Below, piece after piece: positions 21,601-47,119 of a stretch of 64,000 bases of DNA (position 1 is its first letter; the number at the start of each line of letters is the position of its first letter). Below the pieces are notes generated by a model. The model did no database searches. It had not been told where the DNA came from and worked only from the letters and a program-made list of their open reading frames with translations. Both the position numbers and the translations under genes were made by a program. Location: assembly GCA_965202585.1 (NCBI GenBank), contig OZ241827.1, forward strand, positions 57,660,001-57,724,000. Direction: 5' to 3'. Origin of the DNA: Thalia democratica (Eukaryota).

Positions 21601-24600
21601 GTAAATTTCTACATGTTGAGATAACCTTAAACTAAGTAAGCTTTATAGCATATTTTAACTATCTTTAAACTTTTTACTAATACTTATTTAATCAGAAATA
21701 CGTGTATAACTTATAGCATTAAGTAAACACTTGTAACCTCTAAAAAATTTTTCTACCAAAATTTAATTTTGATAATATGGCCAAAAATTACTCTTTTAAG
21801 TTGGTTTAAGAGAAAAATAAAAGTAACGCATCTTTTAATAGCTTTATTTACTCTAAATATTTCTATCCTAAAAATATTTTTTGCTGTTCTATAAAAAAAT
21901 ATAATTTTTATTTAAGCTTGTTATAAAGGCTAGTTTTGAAATTTATATATAAACATACTTTGATTTTATGTAAATTTAAATACACAATAAAACATACTAT
22001 AAGAAATTTAGATACAATTTTTACTTATAACGTAAAATAAAGTTTATTGCGCCATTTCGTGTAAAAAAGGCAAAAAGCCAGATTTTTTTCTAACAGCCGA
22101 CAAATTATACAATTAGCTCTTTTTGTGCACGCCATTACCTTTTGTCTGTACCCAACTTTGCGTGTCCAGACACCAAATTGTCCACTTTGGCGTTTGCACT
22201 TTAGCACAATTTCAGACAAACACTCCCCGGCAACGTGAAATTAAAACCTTAGTTTAAGGGCTTAGAGCGGGCGAAAAGGGATTTACAGATATTCGAAAAC
22301 GTTTGTCGTTCGGACAAATTGGCGTTGTTGGCGGCATGGAGCAAGGCAATTACGAGCGGATAATTCGATACTTTCGGCACAACTCGATACGCTGGCACCT
22401 GTTTGTTGTTGGGCCGGCACCTGCAAAAATACCTCCATCGTATCGGGTTGCAATTACATCGCGGCTTTGATCCGACTTTAAAAGGATGAAGCCCATAACC
22501 TGTTTTCATACCGTAAAAGTATGCTAGTAATAACGATGAATTGACACTGTCAACACAATTTTACTTGGACATTGAAGGATTTATATGAAATCACAGCGTT
22601 ATTAAAAGTTTTTGTTTGTAAACAGCGCATTACAAAAGTTGTGTTTTTCTGTGAGCATTCATTGGGCTGTTAAAAAAATACTAAATATTTTTTATACAAA
22701 TATTAGAGTTTAAAATAGTGTTTAAATAAATATTTTTTTTTATATTTTCATAGGAATGTCCGTATCAATACCGTTCTGCTACGACAACCTTACAAATCGC
22801 CAGGCAGCAGACAGCAGATGCGATCGATCGAAACATCCCCTTCCGAAGCTGGCCACCTGCAAGAGGGACCCCTGTCCCGTTCCATCCAAAACTGAAAACG
22901 AGACCAGGTAACTTTTATATGCGTTGAATTTATTATTTGATGGCGGTTTTTCTGTTTTTTAAAGCAAAATTGCATGAGAAATGTTAGTGAAAGGTTTACT
23001 GGGTTGCCTGTAAAAATTGACAATTGGTAAAATATGACATAATTTGTTGTAGAAGTGTTCTGATGGAAACAAAAGAGCCGTGTAATTGGCCTGTTTTCAC
23101 CACGCACTGCTTAAATAACAGTATTGAGGTATCATGTATCACTCTTAACCTTACTAAAATTAAATTAGCTATCGTTACGATCAAACTAAGTCAAGTGAAA
23201 CGCGATTGAATCGATAATAGACAAGGGAAAAGCAACACAAATATTTTTTAAAATAGTAACTCAAAACCTAAATAGTGAGAATAAACCATGTAAAATCAAG
23301 TTGAAATATCTTAGTTTGAAAAAATCCTTGGTATTTATCAAAATTTCAAACAAATATTGTATTCAGCTAAGTTTGTAAATTGATGAACAAAGTGTAAAAC
23401 AAAGCTTATTAAGATTATTGAACAAACATTTCTAAAAGTTTCTTCATTATTTACTCAACTTGTATTATAAGTTTACTAACTTTTAAGCTTGGTAAAATAT
23501 AGGCGTTAATATGCTTGAGTAGAGCTTCTTTGATCAGAGCTTTTAACTCTTATGATTGATGTTGTTGAGATCTTATCTCGCTCCTTTAGAGACTCTTATC
23601 GAGCGGCTCTAATACGTAAGAAGCTGTCAAAGCCAAGAGGAGTGCAAAACAGGTGAAATTCAATCACTCAAAACTTTTCTCAAGCACCCTTTTGAAGTGT
23701 TGCACCTCAATGTATTCATGCCTCGAAACAATACCTTTCATGTAGGGAAATTAGATATCATTTGTTCTGCAAACAGCAGGGATAAAAGGGTTCTTTTGAA
23801 ACTTCTTTAACTTGAGTCAGCTGATAAGATTTAAAAAGCTTCCAGTGATGTTCTGAAGGCGACCTAAAATACATTTGAAGTTTATATTTTGAATATTACG
23901 TTTTGCATCAATTTGTCTGCTTCTTAATGTTTATTTTTACACTTAAAATTTCAAACATTTAAGTTTATTTTGAATTACGTAACCAATTATAAAAGTTCTC
24001 AACTACAATATTTTTGTTAATCCTTAACAAGAGGCTTAATTTTTAACTTAAAGCGTTTCGATACCAAGTTCTCAACTTTGATTAAGAACAATAAGTTTTT
24101 AGAAAAATATTGTAAACATTGAAAAGTTTATATTCATAATGCCCTTAATTGACTTACTTAATAAAAACATTTGGAACAAACTATCATTTTTAGTTATACA
24201 GTAGATATTTTAATAAGTAGTTAAAACTTTTCAACAAAACAAAAAACTTTTGCAAATTTATAAAACTAAAACGACAACCGTTTTGAGTAAATAATTAACA
24301 CTTTTATTTAAAAATCTATAATGTTAAAAGAAGGGATTGTTGTAATATAATCGAACTACTTTCGTACATAAACTACTAATTTTGTTTTATAATTCTTATA
24401 TAAAACTAAGACAGCTATGTACATAGAATACTTCTAAAAACACTACACAGAAGTATTTTGTAAACAAAAGCTTCTTTATAGTTCAACAACACGATTAAAA
24501 CTTTATGAATTGTTTTAGACGAAAAACCGTAAAAAAATAACATTATTTGTAGTACAGGTAAATAGCGAACATGAGATAACTTTCCATGTAAAGGAAAAAG

Positions 24601-27600
24601 GCTAGAACTTCTTTGCTCACAAATTATTTTGAGTATGTAAGGCTTTGCTTAAGAATTTGTGTACGAGCAGAGTTAGACAAGAAATTTTTGAGTAAAACAA
24701 TTTTGGCTCGGCTGGTAAGCTAAAAAATTGCGTTTTTGTTTTAAGTTTGTTTTAGAGTGCAGATGAAGTTCAAAGACTGTAATACATTTTTATAGTGCTT
24801 ACTAAATCAGTATTGTTTTAATATTTATTTTTTAATTGAACCTGGATTAATAAAAAATAGTCTAGAAACTTTCCTTATAATTTTTTAAAGACGAATTTAC
24901 ATTAATCAAACTATCAAAAAAGGTTAAATCACAATACCAGTAAAAGTTTTCTATTAAGTTATGTATTAATCGGATTTCAACTCTTTAAAAAGTAAAAAAA
25001 CAGAAGGACAAAAGAAATTAAATTAATAGTGTAATATGTTTTAGTAAGCTTTTTTAATAAGTGCTAAGTTTTTATTAACTTGAACTTTTTTTTACCTAGA
25101 AAGACTTAAATTATTTTACTACTACAAGTATATTTGACTACAGCTTAAAGTAATTTAATTTACCTGTTTTGTTTGCAAGCTTTACTTGCTATGAATGTTT
25201 TTTGCAAATCTAAGCAGAACTTATAGCATAAAGTACAAACTAAATAATTGCTGACACATCAACAGCTATGACAGTGTACATTACACAATGTGAAAATTTG
25301 CACTTATTAAAACCAATTGCAAATCAAGGTACACAAAAACAATTAAAAAATTAATATATTTTCCATTGTAGATTAACGGCTAGACGCAAATAAACAAAGA
25401 ATTGCATTGTAGTCAGTTTTAATCTCATTTGCTTCCTGCTTTATCAAACTTATTAGTAAGTATAACATAATTAAAAAAAGCATATAAACTTGGACTCAGC
25501 CCAACTGGTTGTCAATTAATTTTCATCAATCAAAATCACCATTTCAACGATTAAAACCTAGTTGAATGTAAAAAAGTATACGAGCATGCTTATCAGCAAA
25601 TTATGAGGCAGAACTCCAGCAAAGCAGAGCACCGAGTAATTGTTCAAGTAATCAGATGATATCAAAAAATTTAAAACAATGTCAGCAGTTAGAAGTAGCA
25701 GCAGATTTTTATTATACAAATTTGTCATCTTTTTTGTCATTTCGCTCGAACCGCGTCTCCACGGCAACCTTATTGTCGCCGCCGTTCCTTGGCAACCAAC
25801 CGGCGATTGTTCCACGGCCAACAAGCCGCAATCAAACGGCTCGGGGGTTGAAAGCGGGAATGCAGGTACAAGGCTTCCATTAGAAAGTAGTTTCCCGCTC
25901 AATAATAAAAGGAGTTCTGTTGAATTTGTTAACGAGGCATCGCGTGAAGTCAGAGCCCAGTTAGTTTGTTGTTTTTTAAGGGAATACATTTTTAATAAGA
26001 AGAAATAGATATGATCACTTTGTAAATAATTTGATATTGCTTGAAAAAATATATTTCAAACAATTTATAGCTAATGGTGTTATAAAACAGTAAATTTCAG
26101 TCTGGTTTTAAAAAATATTTTAAAATAAACTAGTTTTGTAATTAAACTTACAGTCTTTAAAACAAAACACCCTTTATGAACTTCTTGTTAAAATATATCA
26201 TAATTTTTTTTTGTATTTTAAGTATCTTAAACTTACTAAGCTTGGTCAATTCAAAGAAAGTTTTGAATAAAGACTGCTTTTCTAATATTTAAATAAAACA
26301 AATATGTTGAAATTTTGTTTTTAAGTTTTTTAGCTTTGTGTTTGCCTCAAAGTTGCTCCAATGGTCAAATAAACTACAACAAAAAAATTAGAAATAAAAA
26401 AGAGCATTTTTTTTAGTAGAATACCATAGCTAGCTTTAGCTACAAATCCTTGCAAACAGATAGTCAAATGTAAATATTTGCATAAAAAAACCTTTTAAAG
26501 CGGGTTACTTGGCCTTCGCACATCGTTTCTTATGTGTTTTTGCTTTTTGGTCTATTTCTATCATTTAACACTTAAACACTCGTCGATATCATCTATTAGC
26601 TTTGCACAGTAGAGTGTTATAATCAAATTAACACGTTTCTATAATTGGCATCTATCAATTACAAAGTTTGATTTTAAAATATCAAAAAAGATATGAATTG
26701 TTGAAAGTAACGCAAAATAAGATGTGGAAATTTTTGAGAGCTAAATTGTTGAGATAAATTTGTGATTTTACATTGATGAAGATTTTAAATCTTTTAATAT
26801 GCTTACGGGATATTTTTGTAGTAATTTTAATTTGTTTTTACCTAATTAGTCTAAAACATTATATTTAATTTTTTTGCTGAGTCTAATAATAGAAAAATAA
26901 ATTAAATTAGTCTATGATGTTATAAAAAAGTAAGAAAATTTTAATTTTGTTTAAATTTTTAACTTGTGCAAGAGAATTTGTTTCCTAAAAAACGTATTTG
27001 AAGTCAAAATTACACGGTTTGAAAACTTTCAAATAGTTATTGTGAAAATTTTGTGTTTGCTTATTCATTAATGTACAAACTTTTATTTTAAATTTAATAT
27101 TTTTTTTGTCACTAAGCAGAAATAGATTAGTACTATTTGTTTAGTTATAACTGTCAAGATAATTTATTGGTTTTTATTTGCATTTTATCAGTTAACGGTT
27201 CAAAAGGACTTCTACAAACAAAAAGCTAGTATTACTTATGCTGTTAAGTAAAACTAATTGTAAACATTTTCACGTTAGTGAAAAGAATTGCTTAAAAAAA
27301 AACCAAAAGATAAGCCTTAAAGTTGCAATAAATCATGTAAACTTTAGACTTTAAATAGTTGTAGCAGAAAATTCATGCTGATAATAGACCCTAAATTAAT
27401 TGTAGATTATGATTCATAGCTTAAAACTTGATTATTATAAAGGTACATGGTACAATGTTTTGTAATTTATAGAATGAAAGACTACATTTTTTTTTCGATA
27501 CAATCTTTATAAAAATAATAGTCTCATTTTACAAAGATCTATTAACTATCAAGTTTGTTTTAAAACAGCATTTAGTTGTTCGCAAATAATATGTTTATTT

Positions 27601-30600
27601 TTTTAGTAAAAATCAAAGATAATTCTTTTTGACAACTCGAGGTATTTATTTAATAGTCGTTTAAAAACCTTCTTTTGAAGTTTTTAGGAGTTTAAGTATT
27701 ATTTTACCTAATAAAAGCAATGTTTATGAGATGAAACAACATTATTTTACAACCCTAAACGAGTATTAATTGTGTTTGACAAAAAACATCGTTAGATAAT
27801 AAAAGATTATGTAATGTGATTGTGTAAGCAATTTCATTATATAAAGAAATGTGAGATTAACAATATAACTTAGTTTTGAAGTTTTCTTAAAGCTAAAAGT
27901 TGATAGAGATCATTTGAAAATGAACATTAACTGGTTAATGCTTTTTTAAGTTTCAAATATTTTTTTATTACTACTGGTAATGCTTTTTAGACAATATTTT
28001 TATTTAAATGTTAACTCTTTAATCATCAAAGTTTATTGATGATTTTTTTAAACAAAGAGAACGTTGTGTATTTTTTTAAGATCTTACTATAATAAGGAGA
28101 ATAAATAAAAGAACGATTACAAAATAACAGCAAAAAAAAACTGCCAACAATTATTAAAGCATTTACTTTAAAACAAGTTTATCAAGATTTTCTAATAAGA
28201 CGTTTTTGTATCGAAGTTAGCACTAACAACTTTTGATAACTTCCGAACATAACAGAACCTTACAAGTTAATAACGCTAAAAGCTCAAGTAAAAACAAAAA
28301 TGATAATTTAAGGGTTTAGTAATAACGCAAAAGTTTCAATTTGGTTATTAAATTTTGAGGTTTTCAGCTTTGTTCGTCGGCACACCTTTAATTTGGCCCG
28401 GTGTCAGATCTTATGAAAATTTGTATTTATGTTGTTTAAAAACTACATTAATCCCATAACGCACTGCGCTGCTAATACACTGAAGTTTTCAGCTAAACAA
28501 CCTTGCATTTGTAAAATTTTTTTTGTGTTTTCACAAGGCATTTAGATTTTTATTACTAGCATGAAAAGCAGTTTTAATTATAAAGACCTTATTTTTTTGA
28601 TCAAAAACATCTTGGTTCGAAAATTTCAAAATTTAGAAAGCAGGCATCATCATTACAATGCTTACACTATGAAAAGTTTATAGTAAAATATAAAGATACA
28701 GTAAAACAAAACTGATAAATAAGCGTATTTTTTGTGCAAAAAAAAACGGACAAAAGTCTCAATTCTCCCAAAAATTTTAAAAAGTTACGTCATAGACCAA
28801 CTCGTAGTAAGTTAATCTTGTTGCGGCAATATTACACACAAGTTCATATAAAAACTTACTGGTGGTCTTTTGTCATGAAAAAACAACGAGTTGCACTTCT
28901 GTGCCACTTCAATAATTTGTTGTACTACGACCACCCCGACACACAAAAACCTTTTTTCTTTTTTGTTTTCGTCGCAGGCTCTGTTGTAGCACAATAGTGC
29001 GATGGCTGCGCTGTGTGTTAACAGTAGCTACTCGACAAAAGACACAAGCTCGAATAATTTGTGTTCAGATTTCTTTAAGTCGCTGCAAAGACTAGATTAG
29101 GTTTTTAAAAGATTTAGGTAATTGGAAGTTAATAGGTTTTTGAGGTATTTTTAAGTCAGTTATTTTTGTTTTGTTCCACGTAGATGTTTAAGTTTATTTT
29201 AAAGGTTGTAAATTAGGATAAATAAATAACTAAACAATAGTTAACTAGTTTCAAGTATAAGAAGCTTTACCAGTATCCATAATATTTTAAATAGGTAGAA
29301 CTAAAAACAAGTTTTTTGAAAAAAATTATCTTGATAGTTAGGGATTGGTTTAAAGTAATTTTTTATAATACTTTACTCTGAATATCTATTATTTAGCTAT
29401 AAGAATAAATAACGTCAATTGTTTATAATGAATAGAAGTATTTTCAGTTTTTTTTTCGCATTTTGTAAGTGAAAAAATGAATACTTTAAATTATATCTTT
29501 TTTCACAGCTAAATTTCTAAGCTTAGAAATTCAAAATTTATACCAGTGTGATACATTTAAAAGTAAAGCAATTTTTTTTAAGATGCTTACTTCCTTACGA
29601 AATTATACTATAAAGACTACCATAAAAAAGAAAGTTTATAAATACTAGCAAAATAATTAAAATTTCCAAAAAGATGGTTACCGCACTTGTTTACACTATT
29701 ATGGTTTAGATGGTTATATATTAGATGGTTACACTATTAGAAATATTTCTATTACTGATAATGATAAAACGTCGTGCAAATTTTTTACAAACAATTGAAT
29801 TTTAATTGCTTTTTAAAATACTAAAAACCATTGATTTGATAAATACATTTTATTCAAAATTAAATCGCCAGCAACGACGCTCTTATCCGTTTCAAACTCA
29901 GCAACAAAACGACGTCCATTAAGTTATTACAAATACAGTTTGTTTATCACTAAACTGTCACACGCAGGATACTGTTTATGAACGCCAGTATTACAACTGC
30001 ATTGTGTCCTTTAAGGTCGATTTCGGTTGTATAGGAAACGGTATGATGTATTTATACTGATGTGATCCATCACTCTAGTGCAACGAATAAGCGCGGTTTA
30101 ATCAACCGACGAGACGCTGTACTAACAGCATCGAGAGCAAATCCCCACCACTTTGTGTTTGCGCCGGTGACCGCTCATGCGGATCGACTTGAGAGTTGTT
30201 GATTTCACAACTCAATGCGGTCGGCTGCGCTCGCTAGTACTTTAATGCGCTCTCCGGTTCTGAAAGTTTTAAAACTGCTGTGCAGAAACGGCCAGGAGAA
30301 AGAATGAAGTATACCGACTTGTTGATGATAAAATATGATTTTACTAAACTGATGTTACTACGGTTTAATTGTAGTTCTTTGCATTCAGTATACAAAAGTC
30401 GATTAAAATTATAAACAACATTATTAGGAAGCATAATTGAGAAAAAATATATGATTTTACTATAAATTTTCTCAAACAATTTTTTAACTTTTTAATCTTT
30501 CTGAGAAATTCTCTAATACTAGCGCTTAAATAAAATTTTATAATTGTATGTATGACATTTCCAAAGTATAAATATAGCTTCTTTCATGTGCAGAGCATTT

Positions 30601-33600
30601 ACGTTCTACACATAAAAACGTTTTCGTAGGTAAACTTCACTTATATGTTGAAAAGCGTATGCAACAAACGCTTCACGAATATATAAATGCGACCGGTCGA
30701 ATTTTCCAAACAAAAATAAAAGGCACATTTACGAAACCAAATGCGCACTTTCCTAACCAAACAAAACGCGTTTCCGGCATTAAGCCCAGTCAAGACGGCT
30801 TTGCTGTTCAAACAGTCCTGTGCTTGTGATTCTACGCAGAATTACCCGTGTACAGAAATCCGTGAAAAGTTTTGAAAGTTTAAATCGTAGGCAGTGTAGT
30901 GGTGTAGCTCGGAAGTGAGTAAAAGTGCAAATAAAAACAAGATATTGTGGAGAATTAGAACGAATGTGAGCAAATATTTATTAAATACGTTTGTTCTTCG
31001 CCATTCAACTCGTGTTTGTTTTGGTTTTCGACACAGAAAAAGGTGAAAGCGTTTGCAGCGTTTTTAAACAGCAATAACTACGTTTTGTGTATCGTTTGAA
31101 CGTTCAGTTGCCGCAGACTTTGTTAGCATAGCAAGGTATAAAAAGTTGTGAGAATATGTTGCAGAATTATTTTGATGCACAAAGTTTTGTTGCACTAAGT
31201 TGAAATCAGTCGCTGTGCTCGAAACTACTTAAGTACTGCACTTAATTAGCTGAATTAGTGTTTACAGATGTGAAAATAGTAAAGCAGATATTCGTTTGCA
31301 CTAGATAAAAGATAGCAGCAATATAGAAAGTATAAAAAAAATGGTTTGTAGGTAAATTGTTCTTCAAATATAAACTATTTAGCATGATGTTAAGTTTTTT
31401 GAGTGTTCAGTTCATATTAAGAAATAAGGTTTTTGTTGTTTTTCTGTTATAGTTCAGTCGTATTTGTTTCCAAAGTATACAAGAAAGATATAAGTTCAGA
31501 AGAATAAAATGTTTTAAGTAATTACGCTGTACCTTTACGTTTTTCAATTAAAATTAAAGCTTCAGGTCTAAATATAGCTTTTTACCTTTGAATCAGACTT
31601 AAGCTGAAACAATTTTAATTAAATGCTGAAGTTTATGACATATATATTTAATTACATATTTTTTTCGTCAATGTTTTTGTTTTCTATCAACATTACAATT
31701 TCGGGTGAAACGTTTGAAATATTAATACTTTCTGATTAAAATACTTACTCATATTTTAGATTATTTTCAACTGACCTTTTCAAAGTTTTGTCGCGCTTTT
31801 TAATGAAAATCTTCTCTATACGTTTTTCAATGACAACTACATACATGAATATAGTGGTGTAAGCTGTTTACGCAAGACTAAAGATAATAAAATTTTGTTT
31901 TGGATGAGTTTATAAAATTGCATAGACACGAAAGCATATTCATTATGATGTCAATTCAATTTCAAGTAGTGGTGAATTTTATACAACTTTGATCTAAGCT
32001 TTCTGCAGAAAAAGTTGTAGTCAGTCTATATAAGGATTGTTAAACAAAGAAGCTTTAGCGTATAAAAACACGAAAATAGTATTTACACTAAATACTGTTA
32101 AGTTGGTTGTTAACAAGGTCAGAGAAATGTTTTACAAAAACTAGTTTGATTTGTTTTAGTTTGCAATTTAACTTCGTACTTTATAAATCATAGTAGTACT
32201 TTTTTTTCTTTATGATGTTTGCTTAACTTTTATATCGCAATAAAAAACAGCTTAGTACTTTTAAACGCTTTTGGAACAAAATAAACTATTAGAAAGTGTT
32301 CTATAACTACTACTTAACATAGATATAACTTAATACATTTTTTTTTCAAATTGTAGTTTTAGTTGAAAATAATACAAACAAACTTCACTTACATTTAGCA
32401 GTTTCGAAATGTTATGTATAAAACAAACATAATCTTTTTAAGTACTTATTATTGTTACTTAGCAGTTTTTTTAGTTGCTGTTGGACTCTGTCAAAGTATT
32501 CCAATTAGGTAAGTACCGTTTAGAAGCAATTAAAAACTATTTTTAATAATGTCATTATTTGTTGTCATAGTATAAGAATTTAAAACTAATTATGTAGCAC
32601 CTAATGAAAAATGATTGCCTACAAGTTTTATATAATGTCAAATGAAAACGTTTTAATGTGATATTATTTTAGCATTATGTTATGAATGAGAGAAGTTATA
32701 CGCTTAACATAAAAGTTTAATGCATTTAGAAAGGCTAAAAAACAATAGTAGTCAATAAAGTAGTACATGAGAAAAAAACACACTTCATAATTTGTGTATA
32801 TAGAGGGATTGATTCCAGTAAACTTTAAAAATGTTTACTTCGCATAAACTCATTGAACTTTAAACTACTTATTAGAAAAATAAAGTTTGTATAAGCTACA
32901 AGTAAGCCAATGCATAGTGTAATAAAGCATTTAATAATTATAAAAAAAATTTACCTGTTCAAAGTAAATTTTGATATTACTATATTTTGCTGTTTTACCA
33001 TACATAAGTTGACTTAAAATAATGATTAATGATTTCTGTTTTGATATGTTAATACAAAATAAGTTTGTTTGTTTTATTTAACCATATCTATATCATTTTA
33101 TTAAAACTTGCTTAGAAAATTAGAAAAAAACGAACATATAGAGTTTGAATTTTTATCAACAATTGTACTGCTTTTATTAAAAACTCTGAAAGTATACATT
33201 TTTGTATATGAAACATAGCCTTTTTAGTAAAATTTTTAATAAGTAGAAATAAAATGTGGATTGATTTGAAGTTTTTCGTATCTTTTCGATAGGCTCTCCT
33301 TATATTTGCTTAAAATTCATAGCAAAAACTTGAAAAATATGTTCCAACAATTTTTCAGATGGGAAATAGGTCAGTACGGTTCGTGTTCGAAAATGTGCGG
33401 CAGAGGGATCAGAAAAAGATCTGTCACGTGCAAGTTCATGCCTGAAAACTCCACTCACCACGTCACCAACAATGACGTCATGCCTGAAATCATGTGCCCC
33501 AACCCGAAACCTCAGTCGGTTGAACCTTGCGGGTTTGCCACCTGTCCCCCTGTCTGGATGAAGTCTGGTCTCGGGAAGGTTATTTTTCAAAAACATTTTA

Positions 33601-36600
33601 AAATTACATAAAATAGTTCTTGATATTAGGAACTTTTTTTTTTGACTATCAAACCAATTTAAGCAAGGTCTGAACATTTAACAAGGTTAAAAGACTAAGA
33701 CTAGTCATTTAGCTTAGCCTAGTAATTAAGCATAGTCACCTACTTTAAGGAGTATTTTTCATTCGAAAAATAACACTGTTTAGTGTTCTGAACAATGTGG
33801 TAACGGGTTTCGTGAAATTTCCTACTTGTGCAAGCAAAGAACAGGAACAGGCAAATTGATTCAGGTGCCTTCAAAATATTGTTCGCAGAACAAACCGTAT
33901 CGATTGACAAGGAGAAAGTGCAAAGTTAATGAGTGCGAACCGAAATTCATTGCAGAAGATTGGAGTGAAGTTTGTGTTTTTAACTTTAATTACTATTTTG
34001 CCTGTAATTGGCATAATTAGCAACACTTAAAACAGTTTTTAAAATTTTTTTATAGAAAAAGTGTTACTACAAGGTAATTTATAATTAAAACTCATAGATA
34101 ACATTATTATTTTTATTAAACTACTTTGTTAATTACTTTCAAAAACTCAAAAATGCACAGCTGAACTCTTTTTTTAGTGCAAAGGCGACTGCACAAAGTT
34201 ACGAAAAGGTTGGCAAACAAGAAAAGTTATCTGCATCTACATGAAAAATGGAATTTGGCACAAAACTAGTGCGACATCTAAACATTGCAAAAGCCTGAAA
34301 GCTTTTCCGGCTAGAAGAAGTTGCTCACTGCACAAGAAATGTATGTCCAGCTTGGGTTAGTCAACCATGTGTTAAATTCAAAAATAGTTTGTTTTTTTTA
34401 ACGTCTGAGTAATTTGTATAATGTTCTATTTAAATATTTTGTAGCTGCGAATCAAGAAGGGCAAAGCGTGATCAAAAGAAGGCCCAACCCGACCAAGATC
34501 AACGGAGGGCTGAGAGTATTCGTGCAGAAGAGCGCCAGAAAAATCCCCCTCCAACTGACCCTCCCGCTGAAGGCCTTCGTCATCCCTGGAACAACCATCA
34601 TCGCCAAGTGCAGCTTCAAAAAGTGAGTTTTAATGCAAACAACACCGTCACGCACAAGATCAATGCGCTAAAAAATAAAGTTTACTTATCGGCAAATGGG
34701 AGAGAACGATGGAGGCAATTAGCTTTGATTATCTGCCCCTTTGTTTGCTCATATGACGATTTGATGGCAAGTGGGCAAACAAGGTGACATCAATAAGAAG
34801 AAATTTCGCGTCCTGTTTGCCCAACAACTTCAGACGGTGGCCTAGTTTTAAAATTAAAAAAACAAACAAATTTTTGCAATTAACTTTTGTTATTTTTGCT
34901 TCAAACATTTAATACAGTTTGGCGCGCTATAATGAGTAATGCAGTGCGAATTTTGTAATGTTTGGTTAATTGGAGATATTTTCGGACATAAATCTTCCTT
35001 TTGGAGCTAATTAAAGCTGTTTTACATTGCAGCGGTCCTAAATGTTTTTTTCTTTATGCTAACTAGTACTATTTTTGCTCAGCGGTGCGCCATCAAAACA
35101 CGCGTGGTTTGTCAACAAGCGTAGGGTGAAGAGCAGGCGGGGGAAGGTGATGGTGACGAAGGGGGGCAATCTGAAGATGAGCAAGATCAGGATGAGGAGG
35201 AGGCAGGTGGTGAAGTGCCAGGGAGGACAGGGCAGGAGCAGGCTGCTCGTTCTCATCAACAAAAGTTTAAATTTGATTTTATTTCAAATAATCCTAATTA
35301 CCAAAAGAATATGTTAACTGGCTTAATTAAAAATTAAGACTGTTGTAGCGTTTTAGGACTGAGTTAGTAAAACAAATTCTTATAAATTTTAAATTGTGTT
35401 ACTATACAACCTTAATACTAAATTATACAATGTGTTACTTTAAAAGTTCAAGTTCAATCTGAGTAATAAATGCCGTTTAGATGATGTGTGTGTAATAAGT
35501 AACAAATTCAAATCAGCTTGAACTTCAGTAGTTAATTGAATTAAAGATTTGGAAAAAAAAGTTTGATTTTTGTGTTTTTCTGAATACAGCTCTTTGTGTT
35601 TACAAATTACGTCACTTTTAATTTTATTTACGGTTCAATTAAAATAAACAGCAATTTCTCAAACGTAATTTTTTAATTAAAAACGTGATTTATATGCTGA
35701 TAAATAATGTACAATGTTTGTAATGAGAAGTGCATTAAAAATTAAAAAACAAAAAACTTTACAAAGCAGGTTCATAATAAAAGTTCTTGAAAATTTATTA
35801 CCAGTTTATTTTCTCTTTAAATTTATCCACTGAACATGTTTTGAATGAGCTTTTGAATTACGTAATCCTTTGTAGGCTAATAAAGCTTTAAAATTTAACT
35901 TTATTTGTAACACAATTTCAACAAAAGGTTTTAAAAAAATTATGGTTGTAAAATTTTTTTATATTCCGTTAAAACTTTTGTTTTGAATAAGACCTGTATA
36001 GTATTTTTCTCAGCTATAATTAGTAGAAAATTATGAAAAAGCTTAGCTTTATAAAAGTTTGAAGTAGTTCAAAATCAAAGAATACTGTCTTTTTACGTAT
36101 AACAGCTTTACATTGCATGAAAACGCGTATAAGAACATGAAAAGCAACTAATTAAAAGCTTTTAAGATTAACTTCGTATCTAATTAACCTTTAGGAGCTG
36201 CCAGCGGATCGCATAAAGGTTTAGTGCAAGTCAAAGAGAACCATTTGAAAGAAGAGGGTCAAGCTTTTCAACAATCCATTACCAAGTACAGCGACAGAAA
36301 AGTTTGTCAATTTTGCACGTGCAAATTTTACATAAAATATAAAAAAATGCCTTTAGTTTTAAAAGACTTGAAATAGATTACTATTAAGTAATTTTGAATT
36401 TTAAAATCATTAGGTAATTTTTATTTGAGTTTGTAACAACAAGACCGAATAAGTTTAAATATTTGTTCAGTAAATTCTTAGCATAGGGGTGACTTCCATC
36501 GTACAAGCTAATCGTATTAAAATTCCAAGTATACACACAACTTCGCGTTTCAACTTTTAACATTTGCAGTATTTGAAGCTCGCATCTGGAACTAAAGCTG

Positions 36601-39600
36601 TGAACAAGAAGGTAATTAGAAAGAAACCTCACATAGTCAACGATTACAAAGTCGTCCAACTACAAGAAATTGTGCCTGCTAAAACTGACTTTTTAGGTAT
36701 TTTAAGTAATATAAATAGATATTTTCAAAACTATTGATTTCTTATATATTTTTTCTTTAAATTTAGAAAGTAGTTGTTTTCTAATGACTTAATAGCTTTA
36801 TGCTAACATAACATCCGTTAACAACCTTTCATAGAAAAAAATCAAAGTTATGTAATTAAAAAAAAATTCTCGGTTTCATTTACAAGTTTTCGACGAAACA
36901 TGTATTGTACTTTAAATTCTGTTTCTTAAATTAAAATGTACTTTAAGGCTACAGAGAAAGAAAGCACCTTCCGTTGGACTCAAAACAATCCACTGTGGTT
37001 GTCACGATAACGCCTCCCCCTACCAACGAAAACGGGGTGAAAAAGGCGCCATCTATTCATATTGCACCAACAATCGACCCCCTTCAGTACAGTGATGACG
37101 TCATAGTCAACGTCGGAGGGTCGGTGGTGGTAGTTGGGTCGCGACGGGTGACCATTTTGTGCGAGGTTACAGGGGAATACCCTATTAAAGTGAAGTGGAT
37201 GAAAGACGGGCAAGAAATTAAAAATAACGACAGGTTTGATTTATTAGTTACACAGCTTTTTTGTTCAAACTTTATCTACACCAGTGGCGTAGCGTGGTAT
37301 TTTGGTCAGGGGGTGCGCAAATTTTTTTCTCAAAAAATTCTCTAAATTAAAACTTTTGTAATTAGCTATAAAAAAACTTTTTATAAGTAATATAACTGAA
37401 ATAAATTTATTAAGTAAAATAAGTTCGTTAACTGTTTTAAAAAATATTTATATATTCCAAAATTAAACAATTAAATAAAAGTATAAATTTCATTAGAATT
37501 ACTTATACTTGCAAAAATGTAAACTTACTAAATAAAAATTGTTTTTATTACTTATAGTAAACTTAATATCTTTAAAATTTAATATATTCAATAAAACAAA
37601 AGTATCTGTTTTATTTACGAAAAAAAATATCAATCTCTTTAATATACTATACAACAGTGATAACAACACCTCATTGCACATAATTTTGATAAAGTTACAC
37701 AGAAGTTAAAATAGACCAACTTTATAACTGTTATTACAGTTTATTACAACTTTGTAAAATAGTTAAACGCATATTTTTTAAATTTAATTCATTTGATTGT
37801 ATTTGTTTAAAATAAAAATCACAAACAAAGTTTATTTCTCATAGGCCGACACGCTTATCTTGTATGTTTAAAAAAATAAAGTTCAGAAAACTAGCAGTAG
37901 TCTTAACAATATAGCATAAAAAAAAAATTGTAAAATTGTTTAATTTTTCTTTAAGCGTGACGTACTTATGTAAACTTTTTGTAGAAAAATAATCTGCCGT
38001 AAGTTTATACTACAGCGGTGCGCTATATTAATTGCGTGCTTTTTGAGTCTAAATTATTATTAAGTTAATGAACTTATAAAATTTTTCCTTATGGAGTTTT
38101 TGATCAACATCGGTGCGCATTTGCAATTACGCACCGAATCAATATATTGAGTAATAACATGTACTTTCTTAACTTGTCACTAATTGGTATTAAAAATTTT
38201 GTTTAACTTTTTGAATACTAGTTAAACATAGTTGAAAAAAGGCAAATTAAGCAGAAAAAATAAACTATAAAGGGTAATGATATTACATTCTTTTTTTGAT
38301 ACTTTTATTTTTTTGGGTGGCACGCATGCGCCAGTGTCCCTCCCCACGCTACGCCCCTGATCTACACTACATGAAATGAGTTCACGACTACTCAATTTCT
38401 GACAATTAAAATTCCGACATCTAAAGTTCTTATAACTTGTAGTTATTTTGAATTATGTATTTTAGTTAGCATTTTTTTTATATTGCGAAGTAAATAATAA
38501 GACCTACATGCACATTGTTGTTTGTTTAAAAGTATTTTAATTTTGAGATAGAGTTAAAAGCAGTATTAGAGTTTACTAAAACATATTTGTTTTTATTACT
38601 TAATTTTTTATTCTTAATAATCTTTCAATTTCTTCACATTTATAGTTTTATCAATTAGAGTTATTATAACTAAATGAGTTTTTTTAATAACAAATACTTT
38701 TTGAAGTTATAGCCCTTTACATTTTTATAAGAACCAGCTTCGTCGGAAAATAAACATTTAACCCCTTGAATTAGGTCTTAATTTTTAATCATTCATAGTT
38801 AAACATAGAAAGAAAATATTTCATCTTAAAACAGATTTATTAAAATATTTATTTTTTTATTATTCAATTTTTCCCTTAACAACTTTTCAATTTATTCACA
38901 ATTATAATTTCATTTACTAGAGTTATTATAACTATGTTGGCCTTTTTTTAACCTAAAATGTTTTTTGAAGTTATGGCCCCTTACATTTTTTGTAAAAACT
39001 AGCGTTGTCGGAACTTGAATAGTAATAGGTTCTAGTTTATAAACATTCGTAGTAAAACACATAAAGAAAATATTATATCTTAAAACAGAATGATCAAGCT
39101 TGGTGATGGATCCCTGAGAATTTTCAACCCGGAAACATCAGACGCTGGTAACTACGTTTGCATGGCAACCAATCAGTGGGGAAACGACAGCCGAATGGTT
39201 TCATTGTCTGTCACCAACAAACCCACGATTCTGTCCACGACCAGAGATATTGACGATTTTGTGTCCATGGATTTGACAGTGACAGTTGGGTCCCATGTCA
39301 GGGCAAGATTGGGGGCCCGGGTTGTTATCAGGTGCCCTACTAGAGGTTATTACAGTGAAATATTAAGTTTTATTAGTTATAAAATTCTCACTTTTTTTTA
39401 AGTCATAAGACTTTTTTCTTAACTCATTATAATTTTTTTTTAACGAAAGTTTTGATAGCAATTTTCTTTTTTAAAAATGCTTATTACTGGTTGTTAAACA
39501 GACAACGGCTAAAATTTACATTAGCTAACTAAGTACTTTATAATTCAATTCATACTTTCACGTTATTAAATTACGCAAACTTGCAAGATTTAGAAAGTAA

Positions 39601-42600
39601 GTCAGAGCATTACAAAACTTCTGCCAGACTATCTTTAATAAAAAAATTACGCAAGTTGTATTACATACACTTTACGAGTTTTCATTTTGTACATTATGTC
39701 AAAAAATAATGAAAATTACACCCAAAGCAGCTGCTATTGCAGTTTAAAATTAAATTTATATCTAGTATGTACATTGTGTGTAGCAACATTGAGTTTTCAA
39801 CAATGATGTTTTATTAAAATCACACAGTAGAAACATTGATTAATTTCAAAGTTTATTTAAGGTCTAAAAGACAAAATTTTATTTCATGATAAGTTTTATG
39901 TTTTATTAAAAATAAATATTACAGGCTCACCAGAACCATTTGTTCAATGGAACAAAGACGTCAACGGTCTTCAAAGAAACTCGCAAATTTTAATCGACAA
40001 TTCTTTGGAAATATTTCCCACCACTTTGGCTGACACGGGACATTTCAGTTGCTTAGCAACAAACCCTTTTGGTAGCTCTTACCAAGCAACTATACTAGAA
40101 ATTGTCGGTGAGTATAGATTTTAACTGCTTCAAAGATGGTAATTATTAACAAATCTTAAAATATACCGTCATGTAAAACCATTAATAAGTATAATTTTTA
40201 TTATTTTCACAATTTAAACTAGATTTTTTTTTTTCAAAATAAAAGTTTTAGTTTATACTTAGAATAGCAACTTCTAAAGAAGTTATACAAAAACCTCTTC
40301 ATTAGAAATCAAACGTTAATTTGGTATAAAAAAAGTTTTTTAGTTTAAAATTTTCTCTCACTTTAATTTAACTAGTTTCAATTATATAGTTTTGTTACTA
40401 AGAGTATTTACTGTAACCTTAATTTAAAAATTTTCTCTTACTTTAATTTAACTAGTTTCAATTATATAGTTTTGTTACTAAGAGTATTTACTGTAACCTT
40501 AATTAAATTGTAGAATGTACAGTACCTGTAGAATATTTTATCTGTTGTAGTACTGTAATAGTGGAGTTCAATAGAGTATAAATAAGTTTTGATTTTTATA
40601 CGAAATTAAGTCAAAGTTTTATTCAAAACTTTTTAAATTAAATAAACAGACCCGCCTCATATCTCAAATGATGGAGTAATTCTCAAACTAAATGAAATGA
40701 ACGGACTTCCAGAACTTTTGTTAAGCGATTATAATACTCCAGTTTACAGAGTTAAAGCGAACACTACTGTAATGATGGGTAGGTTTTATTATTGACCGAA
40801 CTTATTAAACAAACAGTAAAGATAAGTAGTTTAGTTAATGATACGTATAGGTTGTCCATTGACTGGGTATCCGGAACCAACAATAGAATGGATGTTCAAA
40901 GGAAGTGCAATAGAAACAACAAACAATTCGACAAAATACAGACTGATGCACAACAACAAAGTTCTTTCAATCAGCAATTTCAACAACGTTTCAGTTGGCA
41001 ATTACTCTTGCAAGGGAACAAACACGGCAGGATCGGCAGATGCTAGTCTTCAGCTGAAAATTACCAGTAAGTTTACATTGAAGCTTCAAATTTTTAAAGC
41101 TCTATCCGCTTTATTTTAAGGTTTTTTTTTACTATCATTTTACGTATACGATAAATAAAATTTAAATGTTTTTGATATTGTTAAAAATTCGTATTATGCT
41201 TTATTCCGTTGATATTACTTTTCATAACAATATTTAAACAAACATATTGTTTGTTACATTAAAAAATTTTTAAGATAAAACGTAAAAAGTATAACTTTCG
41301 ATCAAAAAAACAAATTGTTATGAAAAAGTCTAAAAACTACTTTCTTATTTATTTTCAGTATACAAGTACCGAAAGGAGGGGTTGACGGAATGCAGTGCAA
41401 AGTGCGGGAACGCGGGAACCATCACTGACAAGCTGGTGTGCATAGAAGACGGGGTGAGGACGGTGGACGATTGGTACTGCAAAGGAGTGGCCAAGCCGCA
41501 AGTTGAAACCCGGCCCTGCAACAGAAAAGACTGCCCGCCACAGTTGGTATCTTTTTTAACTTTAACAAAACAACAAACAAACAAGTACATTACAAACAAA
41601 TATTTTTATTTTTTGTTCTACAACAATATACAAACAAGTTTTTTTTATGTCTAGATAAAAGTTTTTGATAAACATGCCTATACAATACGTATAAAATGAC
41701 AAGTAAATGTAAGCGATTGCTTTATGCCTATATAAATACTGAATTATGGAAACACTTATGAAAATAAAATAGAAGCTAAACAAGCAATAAAAGCATTTTT
41801 TACATTTTTCAACAAATTTAGGTCATAGAAATTGTTACCTAGATTAGGCGGATTAGAGTTCAAACATGTTATTTAAAAATTTTACAGGAAATAATTGGTC
41901 TTAATGTCAAGTGCTGACTTCTTAATCACTCATATCTGGCTTTTATTTAACTTTTAGCGCATTTAAATCCTTATATTAAAAAGAATACTTTGAATTTGTA
42001 CTAAAACTACAACTTGTCTCATAATTAAAAAAAAAAAAAAAATTTAAGCAATAAGCATTACGTTTACATTTTGTAACCAATTTTAGGCTTTTCACAAATT
42101 ACAGAAAATTTACATGCAATAAGTTTTTTATACCACAAAAATTTATGCTTTATATTGTTGCGTACTTTTTAACTTAATTTAATTTAAAAATGTTGTAAAC
42201 AGCAGTAACATAAATATTTATCATATCAATGTCTTTAACAAGTACTATAACAACCATTAAAAACCTCTATATTAGAATCAAACTAATTACAAGAAATTTT
42301 ATAACAGATATTACGCAAACGAATGGAGCAAATGTTCAGTTGATTGCGGAAATGGAACAAGATTCAGAAAAATATCCTGCGTGGTTCTCATGTCAGACGG
42401 AACTGTTCGTCAGGTTGCCATGGAAAGTTGCCGTAGCAACCAGCAACTTCCGCCACAAAAAGAAACCTGTTTCAGTAACTCGTGCCCTGAGTGGAAACCA
42501 AAACCATGGAAACAGGTTAGATTCGGTGATTTTTTGGAGGGTTAAAATTATTGTACTCACAAGATTTTTAGAATTCTACTTTTGTTAAAGCTTCAGTATA

Positions 42601-43276
42601 AAAGTTCTAAAAATCTGGTTAATTAATCATGTAAGTATTTTTGTTTTTTTCTTTTTTATCAACAAACAAACTAAAACATTTTTGCTAAACTTAAGTTACA
42701 AACCAACAGTGTAGCAAGAAGTGTTACGGAGACGGAATTGGCATTCAACTGAGACAGGTCCGCTGCGTCGCTAATAACGGCACAATCGTCCAAAAGTCCC
42801 AATGCAAAAACCTGCCGAGACCAGAAAAGTACGTTTAAATAATAAAGCTGCATAAGCAACTTGTCATTTATTAACGATAAAAATTAATTTATCAGACAAT
42901 TTGAGTTTATTTCATTGAATCTACAAATTTTTCTTTATAATACATTATTTTTATAAGTAATGATTGAAAATGTTATCACAAAGCATATTTTATTTCTAAT
43001 TTATCTCACTGTACTTATATTAAAAATTTCACCAGAAAAAAAAACTGTCCAAACATCCGATGTCAGCCAGTTTGGAGACCGAGTCCCTGGTCCGTTTGCT
43101 CGGCAACTTGCGGCAGCCATGGCATAAAAACGAGAATTCTTGGCTGCTACTACAAGGGCAGGCCGAAGCAGACCGCCAGGGGGCGTTGCCTAGCGACGAA
43201 ACGGCCTCAGGTTTCCGCCCCCTGCAACAGAATCCCCTGCAGCAAAAATCTTGTTAGGTTGCAGGAAAAAATTTAG
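6608..43276 (+). CDS. ADAMTSL1/3: ADAMTS-like protein, ADAMTSL1/ADAMTSL3/MADD-4 (punctin) family; 33 coding exons, about 1726 aa
   Basis: All 32 introns are GT-AG with matching phases; summed CDS is 5181 nt. Domains: signal peptide, WxxWxxWxxC TSR1, Cys-rich DGTRC...CDG...[12 protein letters not shown], spacer ([19 protein letters not shown]), 12 further TSRs and 4 Ig domains. No prodomain or HExxH metalloprotease domain. Confidence 0.93.
7152..7253 (+). CDS. ADAMTSL1/3: Exon 2 (end of signal peptide plus acidic segment)
   Basis: ttgcag|[34 protein letters not shown]|gtaaga, phase 0-0. Confidence 0.85.
7685..7779 (+). CDS. ADAMTSL1/3: Exon 3 (TSR1, first part)
   Basis: [32 protein letters not shown], phase 0-2. 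Confidence 0.93.
8188..8233 (+). CDS. ADAMTSL1/3: Exon 4 (TSR1, second part)
   Basis: [15 protein letters not shown], phase 2-0. Confidence 0.92.
9095..9355 (+). CDS. ADAMTSL1/3: Exon 5 (ADAMTS Cys-rich domain)
   Basis: [18 protein letters not shown]...CSLHC...VVDGTRC...VCIEGKCE, phase 0-0. Confidence 0.95.
11216..11336 (+). CDS. ADAMTSL1/3: Exon 6 (end of Cys-rich domain)
   Basis: [40 protein letters not shown], phase 0-1. Confidence 0.95.
13245..13307 (+). CDS. ADAMTSL1/3: Exon 7 (spacer)
   Basis: [21 protein letters not shown], phase 1-1. Confidence 0.9.
13603..13748 (+). CDS. ADAMTSL1/3: Exon 8 (spacer)
   Basis: [18 protein letters not shown]...[16 protein letters not shown], phase 1-0. 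Confidence 0.88.
15176..15350 (+). CDS. ADAMTSL1/3: Exon 9 (spacer end / TSR2 start)
   Basis: [58 protein letters not shown], phase 0-1. An in-frame alternative acceptor would start the exon at 15188. Confidence 0.88.
16556..16715 (+). CDS. ADAMTSL1/3: Exon 10 (TSR2)
   Basis: [23 protein letters not shown]...[18 protein letters not shown], phase 1-2. Confidence 0.9.
17155..17202 (+). CDS. ADAMTSL1/3: Exon 11 (48-nt Tyr-rich linker, symmetric)
   Basis: [17 protein letters not shown], phase 2-2. Confidence 0.75.
17335..17545 (+). CDS. ADAMTSL1/3: Exon 12 (TSR3)
   Basis: [24 protein letters not shown]...[18 protein letters not shown], phase 2-0. Confidence 0.95.
17796..17928 (+). CDS. ADAMTSL1/3: Exon 13 (TSR4)
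   Basis: [44 protein letters not shown], phase 0-1. Confidence 0.93.
18374..18395 (+). CDS. ADAMTSL1/3: Candidate exon 14a (22-nt micro-exon, alternative to 14b)
   Basis: tcttttccactacag|CAAATAAAATGATTTTTCCCAG|gtaaga. Phase 1-2, encodes ANKMIFPR in frame between exons 13 and 15. Confidence 0.55.
18396..18489 (+). CDS. ADAMTSL1/3: Candidate exon 14b (Lys-rich linker)
   Basis: tttttcccag|[32 protein letters not shown]|gtaagt. Phase 1-2, in frame. Confidence 0.65.
18825..18981 (+). CDS. ADAMTSL1/3: Exon 15 (TSR5)
   Basis: [25 protein letters not shown]...[12 protein letters not shown], phase 2-0. Confidence 0.94.
20101..20269 (+). CDS. ADAMTSL1/3: Exon 16 (TSR5 end / TSR6 start)
   Basis: KCFLGLCP...[17 protein letters not shown], phase 0-1. 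Confidence 0.93.
22754..22907 (+). CDS. ADAMTSL1/3: Exon 17 (TSR6)
   Basis: [51 protein letters not shown], phase 1-2. Confidence 0.92.
23560..23870 (+). mobile_element. Possible degenerate Gypsy/Ty3-type integrase fragment
   Basis: Frame from 23613 reads [35 protein letters not shown], echoing the YVRSC..CQ...G.LQPL...PFE.VH.DF pattern. IRFKKLP follows in a later frame. Flanked by stops. Confidence 0.35.
25679..25959 (+). CDS. ADAMTSL1/3: Candidate internal alternative first exon with its own signal peptide (short isoform)
   Basis: aaaacaATG, then [39 protein letters not shown]..., open to GCC CA|gttagt (phase 2). This matches the phase-2 acceptor of exon 18. Confidence 0.62.
33359..33578 (+). 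CDS. ADAMTSL1/3: Exon 18 (TSR7)
   Basis: [24 protein letters not shown]...[28 protein letters not shown], phase 2-0. Confidence 0.94.
33784..33969 (+). CDS. ADAMTSL1/3: Exon 19 (TSR8)
   Basis: [16 protein letters not shown]...[20 protein letters not shown], phase 0-0. Confidence 0.93.
34178..34355 (+). CDS. ADAMTSL1/3: Exon 20 (TSR9)
   Basis: [19 protein letters not shown]...[24 protein letters not shown], phase 0-1. Confidence 0.92.
34445..34622 (+). CDS. ADAMTSL1/3: Exon 21 (linker / Ig1 start)
   Basis: ...[35 protein letters not shown], like the ADAMTSL1/3 pre-Ig1 segment; phase 1-2. Confidence 0.92.
35083..35264 (+). CDS. ADAMTSL1/3: Exon 22 (Ig1, very basic)
   Basis: [61 protein letters not shown], phase 2-1. 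Confidence 0.9.
36195..36301 (+). CDS. ADAMTSL1/3: Exon 23 (linker)
   Basis: [36 protein letters not shown], phase 1-0. Confidence 0.75.
36570..36696 (+). CDS. ADAMTSL1/3: Exon 24 (linker)
   Basis: [42 protein letters not shown], phase 0-1. Needed to reconcile the phases of exons 23 and 25. Confidence 0.75.
36948..37233 (+). CDS. ADAMTSL1/3: Exon 25 (linker / Ig2 first half)
   Basis: ...[28 protein letters not shown], phase 1-2. Confidence 0.92.
37282..38359. mobile_element. Non-autonomous hAT-family element (MITE), 1078 bp
   Basis: TIRs CAGTGGCGTAGCGTGG and CCACGCTACGCCCCTG match at 15/16. Perfect 8-bp TSD ATCTACAC at 37274-37281 and 38360-38367. No ORF inside. Confidence 0.9.
38570..39088 (+). 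repeat. Diverged tandem duplication, unit about 254 bp, including the exon-26 acceptor
   Basis: Shared blocks tagagttattataacta, ttttgaagttat(a/g)gccc, gtcggaa and aagaaaatatt..atcttaaaacag, ending at 38834 and 39088. Confidence 0.8.
39089..39345 (+). CDS. ADAMTSL1/3: Exon 26 (Ig2 end / Ig3 start)
   Basis: [27 protein letters not shown]...RVVIRCPTR, phase 2-1. Confidence 0.95.
39925..40107 (+). CDS. ADAMTSL1/3: Exon 27 (Ig3)
   Basis: [12 protein letters not shown]...[35 protein letters not shown], phase 1-1. Confidence 0.94.
40345..40504 (+). repeat. Near-perfect 80-bp tandem duplication (2 copies)
   Basis: ttttctct(c/t)actttaatttaactagtttcaattatatagttttgttactaagagtatttactgtaaccttaatt starts at 40351 and again at 40431. 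Confidence 0.95.
40650..40778 (+). CDS. ADAMTSL1/3: Exon 28 (Ig4 start)
   Basis: [19 protein letters not shown]...[11 protein letters not shown], phase 1-1. Confidence 0.88.
40851..41066 (+). CDS. ADAMTSL1/3: Exon 29 (Ig4)
   Basis: [18 protein letters not shown]...[35 protein letters not shown], phase 1-1. Confidence 0.95.
41359..41542 (+). CDS. ADAMTSL1/3: Exon 30 (TSR10)
   Basis: [10 protein letters not shown]...[26 protein letters not shown], phase 1-2. Confidence 0.94.
42308..42515 (+). CDS. ADAMTSL1/3: Exon 31 (TSR11)
   Basis: [24 protein letters not shown]...[18 protein letters not shown], phase 2-0. Confidence 0.94.
42710..42828 (+). CDS. ADAMTSL1/3: Exon 32 (TSR12)
   Basis: [39 protein letters not shown], phase 0-2. 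Confidence 0.93.
43036..43276 (+). CDS. ADAMTSL1/3: Exon 33 (TSR12 end, TSR13, then read-through to TAG)
   Basis: [29 protein letters not shown]...[18 protein letters not shown]. The 3' end is uncertain (possible donors after 43252 or 43257). AATAAA at 43821. Confidence 0.85.
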
Positions 43277-46189: not shown

Positions 46190-47119
46190 AAGGACAATAG
46201 ATAGCTATAAAGTCTAGCAACTGTGCCTCTGTTTCTTGAAAATTCGAGGAACAGCTATACAATAGAGTTGTTTTTGGAGGAAAGCTTGTACTTGCAAGGC
46301 ACCAAAGAAGACTACACTTGCAGCGACGGCTTTCTGATGATTCTACCTATTTTTGACGGTATTGTCTGCGACAAAACTGGATTATGGGTATCTCCTGAAC
46401 CTGTTAGATGTATTAGAAGTAAATAAACAAAGTTTTCAATTTTTTTGTTTTAGTGTATTGTAACTACCAGTAAAAAGTTTTTCAAATTGTACAATAAGTT
46501 TAGTATTTACACATGCTTTAAGTTTTATGAAACTTTACAAAATTTTACTTGCTTAATGTGATAGACGGTTAAGTAGAATATTTAGATCACTAACATCCCC
46601 TAGTTATCGTTTGCCTGAAAAATTTGTGCGAATAAAATGCGACGGCAATTTTTTTTATGACAGTAAAGTTGAATACGTGTACGAGTGTTTGGACAACGGT
46701 ACATTGTAACTCAGCAGAAGGAATCTGCATAAAAAGTGAGATAAAATAGTATACTTCTGTTTGAAATCAATAAAAGTAGTAACACGATATAAACTGCTTT
46801 ATAGGTCGTAACCACAGTTTTGGAATTTTTAAATCGTAAGTACTTTTTATAAAGCATTTTTGAACACTTTTTTTTTAGCTACTTTTGACAACTAAGCTCA
46901 TACAGAATTTTCCGAACCGCTTAAAACAGCTGATTACGGAGTTTTGTATGAATACAATCATTAAAATGATCAGTAATTTCTGACGACATTTGTCAACTAC
47001 ACTTCCTGCGCCGCTGACAACTACGAATTGTATCTTGAAGACGTCAGAAAGAAAATAAATCTTTTACTTTGCAGCAGAACTGACGAGTGGCCTGTAAACA
47101 GCCTCCATCTGCGGTCTAA
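46190..47119 (+). pseudogene. Three disabled Sushi/CCP exons (46190-46418, 46604-46735, 46906-47119)
   Basis: Each exon ends in a phase-1 GT donor. CCP motifs: YTCSDGF...IVCDKTGLWVSPEPVRCIR; YDSKVEY..ECLDNGT[fs]NSAEGICIK; FVNYT.C...LCSRTDEW[fs]ICGL. Every exon has an internal stop or frameshift. Confidence 0.75.

Follow-up and report, generated by a model that had tools for sequence, protein, structure and literature searches.

Among secreted proteins that dictate which receptors are gathered at a synapse, Punctin/MADD-4 with its isoform code is the best understood, and the evidence for this code has so far come from a single nematode gene. In Caenorhabditis elegans, the long forms of madd-4 consist of ten thrombospondin type 1 repeats (TSRs), a cysteine-rich module, a spacer, one immunoglobulin (Ig) domain and a PLAC domain, and the short form corresponds to the C-terminal part, with seven TSRs, the Ig and PLAC domains and a signal peptide of its own (PMC9083331, PMC13142758, PMC11385328). 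The short form is made by alternative promoter use (PMC9083331, PMC13142758), and the isoform repertoire sets the cholinergic versus GABAergic postsynaptic identity (PMC9083331, PMC13142758, PMC11385328). Here we analysed a 64,000-nt stretch of the Thalia democratica genome (contig OZ241827.1, positions 57,660,001 to 57,724,000 of the forward strand; termed the window, in which position 1 is the first letter), which carries an ADAMTS-like (ADAMTSL) gene of the punctin type, and confirmed that intron 17 of this gene harbors an internal start exon, termed exon 1b. The structural prediction of a short isoform made by exon 1b is supported, and we put the full mechanism, namely an own start inside intron 17 that yields a secreted short isoform, at a probability of about three in four.

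The long/short design of this gene is the same in outline as that of C. elegans madd-4. As in MADD-4B/MADD-4S/PunctinS, the start is internal and the N-terminally truncated form possesses its own, here predicted, signal peptide. Moreover, as in MADD-4S, the short form is devoid of the Cys-rich and spacer modules, and seven TSRs are kept in both. Compared to the single Ig of the worm protein, however, there are four Ig exons here, and the PLAC domain of the worm has no counterpart that turned up in our gene model, in which no search aimed at PLAC was made. The break points differ as well: the worm short form loses three TSRs, whereas six would be lost here by the numbering of the original prediction, three upstream TSR exons being confirmed by Pfam. 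In addition, the isoform-specific peptides are unrelated in sequence, and the alternative promoter and the cholinergic/GABAergic roles have been shown in the worm, whereas the isoform described here is known from sequence and from bulk or community RNA.

Vertebrate ADAMTSL1 and ADAMTSL3 (punctin-1 and punctin-2) are called orthologs of Punctin (PMC13142758). The mammalian isoforms described in the papers cited here are C-terminal variants, namely the short punctin-1 and truncated-PLAC forms (PMC10850197, PMC13668732). In its predicted overall layout, the long form encoded here resembles that of vertebrate ADAMTSL1/3, with a putative TSR1, Cys-rich module and spacer followed by TSR blocks interrupted by Ig domains, whereas the exon 1b isoform, unlike these C-terminal variants, differs at its N-terminus. 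THSD4/ADAMTSL6 belongs to a different ADAMTSL subfamily without Ig domains, and its beta isoform is an N-terminally shorter form from an alternative start. The alpha and beta isoforms of THSD4/ADAMTSL6 have different tissue distributions (PMC10850197).

Exon 1b opens with an ATG at 25679 that has an A at −3 (context AAAACAATGT) and runs for 93 codons, followed by CA and the donor GTTAGT at 25960. It lies inside the 10,451-nt intron 17 (22908-33358). Exon 18 begins at 33359, directly 3' of TTTTTCAG, and its first A completes the terminal CA of exon 1b to a Gln codon ahead of the TSR; because exon 1b joins exactly at the TSR boundary, the short form begins with an intact domain. An ATG in good context, 93 codons, CA|GTTAGT and the phase 2 required by exon 18 had all been claimed beforehand, and each was reproduced from the letters. 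The GC content of exon 1b is 47%, compared to 27-30% in its flanks and 40-53% in the other exons. Throughout this GC-richer patch two further frames lack stops as well, one of them on the minus strand. The frame-2 open reading frame (ORF) of 75 codons starting at 25656, which is broken in other haplotypes, and the minus-strand ORF of 165 codons at 25561-26055 were both rejected as by-products of the patch.

Contigs from sequencing runs were compared with the stretch 22600-26400 of the window. Run X1 is a marine metatranscriptome. Run X5, from another study, has no library type on record, and was taken as RNA because its depth is 431 on exon 17 versus 0-8 in the intron. Two further runs (X6 and X8) behave as DNA, with even coverage of the intron. 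In X1 and X5, one contig each stops at 25959 and continues with ATGGGAAATAGGTCAGTACGGTTCGTGTTC, which is identical to 33359-33388 letter for letter; contigs that stop at 22907, the end of exon 17, carry the same 30-letter continuation from exon 18. The junction 25959-33359, which had been named beforehand as a test of the original prediction, is therefore present exactly in RNA contigs of two independent studies, and since both 22907 and 25959 continue into exon 18, the long and short forms are co-expressed in the same samples. The depth in X1 is 0 over 22981-25520, then 5.8, 11.4, 33.5 and 10.2 over 25521-26028, and 0 again beyond; X5 covers exon 1b at 87-140. The contigs with the junctions of exon 17 and exon 1b to exon 18 have depths of 29.9 and 22.3, respectively. 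The short form is more than a trace product, although contig depth is a poor measure of expression.

The RNA also bears on whether exon 1b is a first exon or, with an acceptor at 25693-25699, a cassette exon inside the long isoform. Three AG dinucleotides at 25691-25698 would indeed give stop-free, frame-keeping exons of 261-267 nt. However, none of the runs shows a joint between 22907 and the 25.3-25.7 kb region, the loose ends of exon 17 all lead to exon 18, and the RNA contigs read straight through 25693-25699, where the AGs are preceded by no pyrimidine tract. We rejected the cassette reading, which is highly improbable, on the grounds of these RNA joints and the read-through. Further upstream, any acceptor in frame with exon 17 would introduce two or three stop codons before the ATG, and the contigs 25583-25839 (X1), 25370-25543 and 25514-25688 (both X5) are colinear with the genome, with no loose 5' ends. 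Exon 1b is read as a 5' exon because there is no upstream joint, the 5' RNA is colinear and the frame-keeping acceptors are followed by stops.

Sequence search using HMMER with the 93 residues against 1.84 billion representative proteins returned two clusters only, both composed of ORFs called on short DNA contigs of marine metagenomes, with Tara Oceans as the source of several. As these ORFs read through the donor into the intron, the contigs are genomic. The original prediction had named a disrupted ORF in relatives as evidence against it, and the ORF is intact in all five related contigs (L001-L005); the three diverged versions of the exon on public metagenome contigs retain the ATG, the hydrophobic core and phase 2. 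Four of the contigs (L001, L003, L004 and L005) are 88% identical to the window in the upstream region, 80-96% in the last ~120 nt before the ATG and 91% in the exon, compared to ~62%, a weak residual similarity, in the intron beyond the donor. L002, the most diverged copy, retains 77-97% identity over 25352-25560, 33-73% over the last ~120 nt before the ATG and 70-87% over the signal-peptide codons, and its 3' third of the exon and the following intron could not be aligned to the window; the upstream block is thus better conserved than the coding part. Conservation that peaks upstream and stops at the donor is what a first exon preceded by its control region would show. All indels within the ORF are multiples of three (+6 nt in the L001-type copies; +3, +6 and −3 nt in L002), whereas those upstream of the ATG are not (5, 2, 14 nt and others). 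The exon accordingly measures 281, 287 or 257 nt, in phase 2 throughout; the L002 donor, AA|GTTGGC, was picked among several GTs, which makes it a weaker item. Against the L001-type copies, the ratio of nonsynonymous to synonymous substitution rates (dN/dS) is 0.19-0.38, with a dS of 0.03-0.07 in the first 45 codons (25679-25813) and 0.24-0.32 in the second half. The low dS near the start points to either constraint at the nucleotide level or a gene-conversion tract.

Upstream of the ATG, the conserved block at 25352-25560 is itself present in RNA: its depth in X5 is 15-30, compared to 2-3 for window-identical intron, and this RNA is identical to the window from 25370 on. Over 25370-25650, coverage reaches 5-10 times the intron background, and the RNA there is therefore not simply intron of the long form. 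The RNA depth then rises ~3-fold near 25650 in both X5 and X1, a profile that fits dispersed starts with a major one near the ATG, and also fits a long outron removed by trans-splicing. In the latter reading, a spliced leader would be joined to an acceptor just 5' of the ATG (e.g. the AG at 25654-25655), the precursor being either the long-form pre-mRNA or an RNA whose long outron contains the conserved block, and exon 1b would have no promoter of its own. There are AG dinucleotides 23 and 30 nt before the ATG, in addition to the depth step; 25340-25580 is absent from four metatranscriptome runs that contain exon 1b, and its absence from metatranscriptomes of the polyadenylated type but presence in X5 is as expected of an outron. 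With trans-splicing, moreover, the mRNA would no longer contain the upstream ATGs at 25566-25603. By contrast, neither X1 nor X5 shows a leader-like loose end at 25649 or 25656, although loose ends of single contigs are listed at other positions, and contigs cross both positions unbroken. Moreover, the AG at 25654 is GG in L002, the first AUG after an acceptor at 25654-25655 would be the one at 25656, and the coverage over 25370-25650 argues against the long pre-mRNA as precursor. Altogether, we regard trans-splicing as rather unlikely. With the conserved block and the colinear RNA from 25583 or 25370, an alternative promoter for exon 1b is a candidate. The TATAAA at 25483 is not kept in L002 or L003, and was not relied on as a promoter element. 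Read by eye, the longest invariant run in the alignment of all copies, the 30-nt stretch AATTAATTTTCATCAATCAAAATCACCATT, shows homeodomain cores of the TAAT type and, in reverse complement, a PBX/HOX-like site (TGATTGAT).

The predicted signal peptide has a basic n-region with Arg5, Arg9 and Lys14, an h-region FVIFFVISL, and a c-region EPRLHG with a Pro at −5 and a Gly at −1. The hydropathy maximum is 3.2 in a nine-residue window and 1.49 in a 19-residue window, the latter being too low for a membrane span or anchor. All five sequences agree in the segments LLYKFVI[F/V]FVISL and RLH[G/S], and the sole change at −1 is from Gly to Ser, also a small residue. These features fit a putative cleavable signal peptide that would be cut after residue 29. 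Of the signal peptide claimed originally, the basic n-region and the hydrophobic core are present and conserved, and cleavage itself stays a prediction. The remaining ~64 residues form a low-complexity, fast-evolving linker. Searches of the 93 residues using Pfam and the language-model protein Atlas assigned no family, as expected of a signal peptide plus linker. Two short segments of the linker are invariant: WQPxxDCS (25790-25813), which holds the only Cys of the peptide and has a W-to-C spacing like that at the start of a TSR, and ESGNxG (25850-25867), in which a Ser-Gly beside an acidic residue represents a possible glycosaminoglycan attachment site.

Several observations weigh against a secreted short isoform made from the window's own copy. 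An ATG-initiated ORF of at least 93 codons occurs in 7% of 300-bp block shuffles of intron 17 (p ~0.07); because the ORF by itself is only marginally beyond chance, the case for exon 1b rests on RNA and conservation. Within the conservation, the dN/dS against L002 is 0.85, with the linker barely constrained, and gene conversion among paralogs could inflate the apparent conservation. The h-region is short (nine residues after Lys14), and the residue at −3 is Leu. RNA reaching up to 25370 in one run would place four upstream ATGs in the leader. Concerning the RNA, the junction contigs have five mismatches to the window in 89 letters, with L001-type letters at 25900, 25915, 25925 and 25927, so they may come from a paralog or an allele, and the only RNA pieces identical to the window are 25370-25543 (X5) and 25810-25869 (X1). 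The X1 contig over 25583-25839 represents an intermediate haplotype, with seven differences from the window and no indels. The RNA thus proves the junction between exon 1b and exon 18 for a sequence with 94-97% identity to the window, and we strongly infer the same junction in exactly the window's copy. In the two DNA-like runs, the exon 1b contigs (25739-25968) and the summed exon 17 bin (22727-22907) are ~4-30 times deeper than single window-identical intron contigs, a depth excess that suggests several ADAMTSL copies with these exons in common.

Some of these points would also suit a cryptic intronic promoter, i.e. transcriptional noise that is spliced to exon 18 and gives no secreted protein, the transcript being non-coding, prone to nonsense-mediated decay or translated from a downstream initiation site. 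The weakly constrained linker, the marginal ORF statistic and the upstream ATGs are in line with such noise. Of these ATGs, the one at 25566 is directly followed by a stop codon, those at 25586 (6 codons) and 25603 (18 codons) are kept in all copies, and the one at 25656 opens an ORF of 75 codons (25656-25880) that overlaps the main start in the window haplotype only. However, in the commoner haplotypes, which account for most reads and contigs, this overlapping ORF is shortened to 5 codons (by 25672 T>G) or 13 codons (by a 5-nt insertion), and it is absent from L002, which has GTG instead. Beyond the short ORFs at 25586 and 25603, the main ORF is the only conserved one among the starts at exon 1b. 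Moreover, next to an intron that is scrambled, three diverged sequence types share the ORF with its ATG context, hydrophobic core and splice phase, their indels being in frame, and the depth of exon 1b is of the same order as that of exon 17. Noise of this kind is therefore quite improbable.

A Cys-rich-like exon and the upstream TSR exons all lie 5' of exon 1b, which is spliced to exon 18 just as exon 17 is. Upstream, Pfam searches of single exons identified TSRs in the exons at 17315 and 18757, and in that at 20092 together with exon 17. Downstream, they revealed three TSRs (33360, 33784 and 34178) and four TSRs (41361, 42309, 42710 and 43037), separated by four Ig domains (PF07679, I-set; 36947, 39090, 39927 and 40853). 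The family PF19030 (TSP1_ADAMTS) scored above the cut-off in the exons at 17315, 18757, 33360, 41361, 42309, 42710 and 43037, and just below it at 33784 and 34178. The language-model Atlas alone placed the exon at 9104-9364 with ADAMTS cysteine-rich domains, at a score of 0.92 and with 196 features in common; searches of this exon (9056-9364) against Pfam and against PDB sequences gave no match. A splice-aware dynamic-programming model, which is crude and unreliable in the linker exons, keeps an open frame from exon 1b to a stop seven codons after 43252, if that donor is unused, which corresponds to ~1,050 residues. The product predicted originally, ~1093 residues with three TSRs, four Ig domains and four TSRs, is thus reproduced in its domain count by Pfam, with a length of ~1,050 residues in the crude model; of the modules said to be lost, namely TSR1, the Cys-rich region, the spacer and TSR2-6, three TSR exons and the Cys-rich-like exon were located upstream. 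Taking the further exons to be the same in both transcripts, as we assume, the short form equals the C-terminal part of the long form. The features of the locus are collected in Table 1.

Table 1. Features of the ADAMTSL locus around exon 1b (positions in the window).
Feature	Positions	Strand	Evidence and remarks
Exon 17, last exon specific to the long isoform	22754..22907	+	RNA joins 20269 (end of exon 16) to exon 17, and 22907 to exon 18
Conserved non-coding block, candidate promoter or 5' leader (outron)	25352..25560	+	77-97% identity even to L002; RNA in X5
Invariant 30-nt stretch, candidate regulatory element	25514..25543	+	AATTAATTTTCATCAATCAAAATCACCATT; longest invariant run among all copies
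Minimal 5' untranslated region	25583..25678	+	X1 contig; short upstream ORFs at 25586, 25603 and 25656
Alternative first coding exon (exon 1b)	25679..25959	+	ATG, 93 codons plus 2 bases, phase 2; RNA and conservation
Predicted signal peptide, residues 1-29	25679..25765	+	Hydropathy and conservation
Splice donor GTTAGT of exon 1b	25960..25965	+	Loose RNA ends at 25959 in X1 and X5; kept in L001, L003, L004 and L005
Exon 18, common to both isoforms, first TSR of the short form	33359..33578	+	Pfam TSP1_ADAMTS, E=6e-11
Remaining shared exons	33784..43276	+	Two more TSRs, basic linker, four Ig domains, four TSRs; Pfam on single exons

We propose that transcription would start inside intron 17, probably between ~25370 and 25650, behind the conserved block of ~210 bp. 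Exon 1b would supply the ATG, a cleavable signal peptide of ~29 residues and a linker of ~64 residues, and its GTTAGT donor would be spliced in phase 2 to exon 18, at a TSR boundary. The product would be a secreted, N-terminally truncated protein of ~1,050-1,100 residues, composed of three TSRs, four Ig domains and four TSRs, and devoid of TSR1, the Cys-rich module, the spacer and the first TSR block of the long form. Of these steps, we infer the own promoter, the signal-peptide cleavage, the secretion and the normal 3' end of the exon 1b transcripts. By analogy with the worm, an isoform-specific role like that of MADD-4S, with an isoform mix that varies by cell type, might be considered as a speculation.

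In a broader context, an internal start exon with its own signal peptide might be an old feature of ADAMTSL1/3/MADD-4-type genes, kept here through an expansion of the family and providing cell types with different isoform mixes, e.g. at excitatory versus inhibitory synapses; drawn from the analogy with the worm, this idea is doubtful. As a second animal lineage, this one would make the question of an ancestral or a convergent origin testable, provided that the ADAMTSL gene makes a truncated form with its own signal peptide from an internal start, that selection acts on the exon and its upstream block, and that the exon is present in several paralogs. Exon 1b belongs in the gene models of the ADAMTSL family in this genome; if it is left out, annotation guided by similarity to the long form will miss the short form.

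Searches of exon 1b together with its upstream block against the 64-kb window using blastn and tblastn found no second copy, and exon 1b is therefore not a dispersed repeat within these 64 kb. A search of the whole window using Rfam yielded nothing at the gathering score. In addition to exon 1b, six of nine well-supported domain exons have donors with a T at +3 (GTTATT, GTTTGT, GTTAGT, GTTGGT and GTTAGA overall), which is unusual compared to the common GTRAGT consensus; these donors, at 33579, 33970, 34356, 39346, 41543, 42516 and 25960, were found although the scoring of the gene model penalised T at this position. Pfam also identified a Sushi/CCP exon at 46249-46418 (E=1e-4), 3 kb past the last TSR exon, which the crude model chained to the ADAMTSL frame and which may be part of a separate gene. 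Finally, two near-identical ORF-bearing stretches are located at 645-1256 and 58784-59397 of the window, ~58.1 kb apart.

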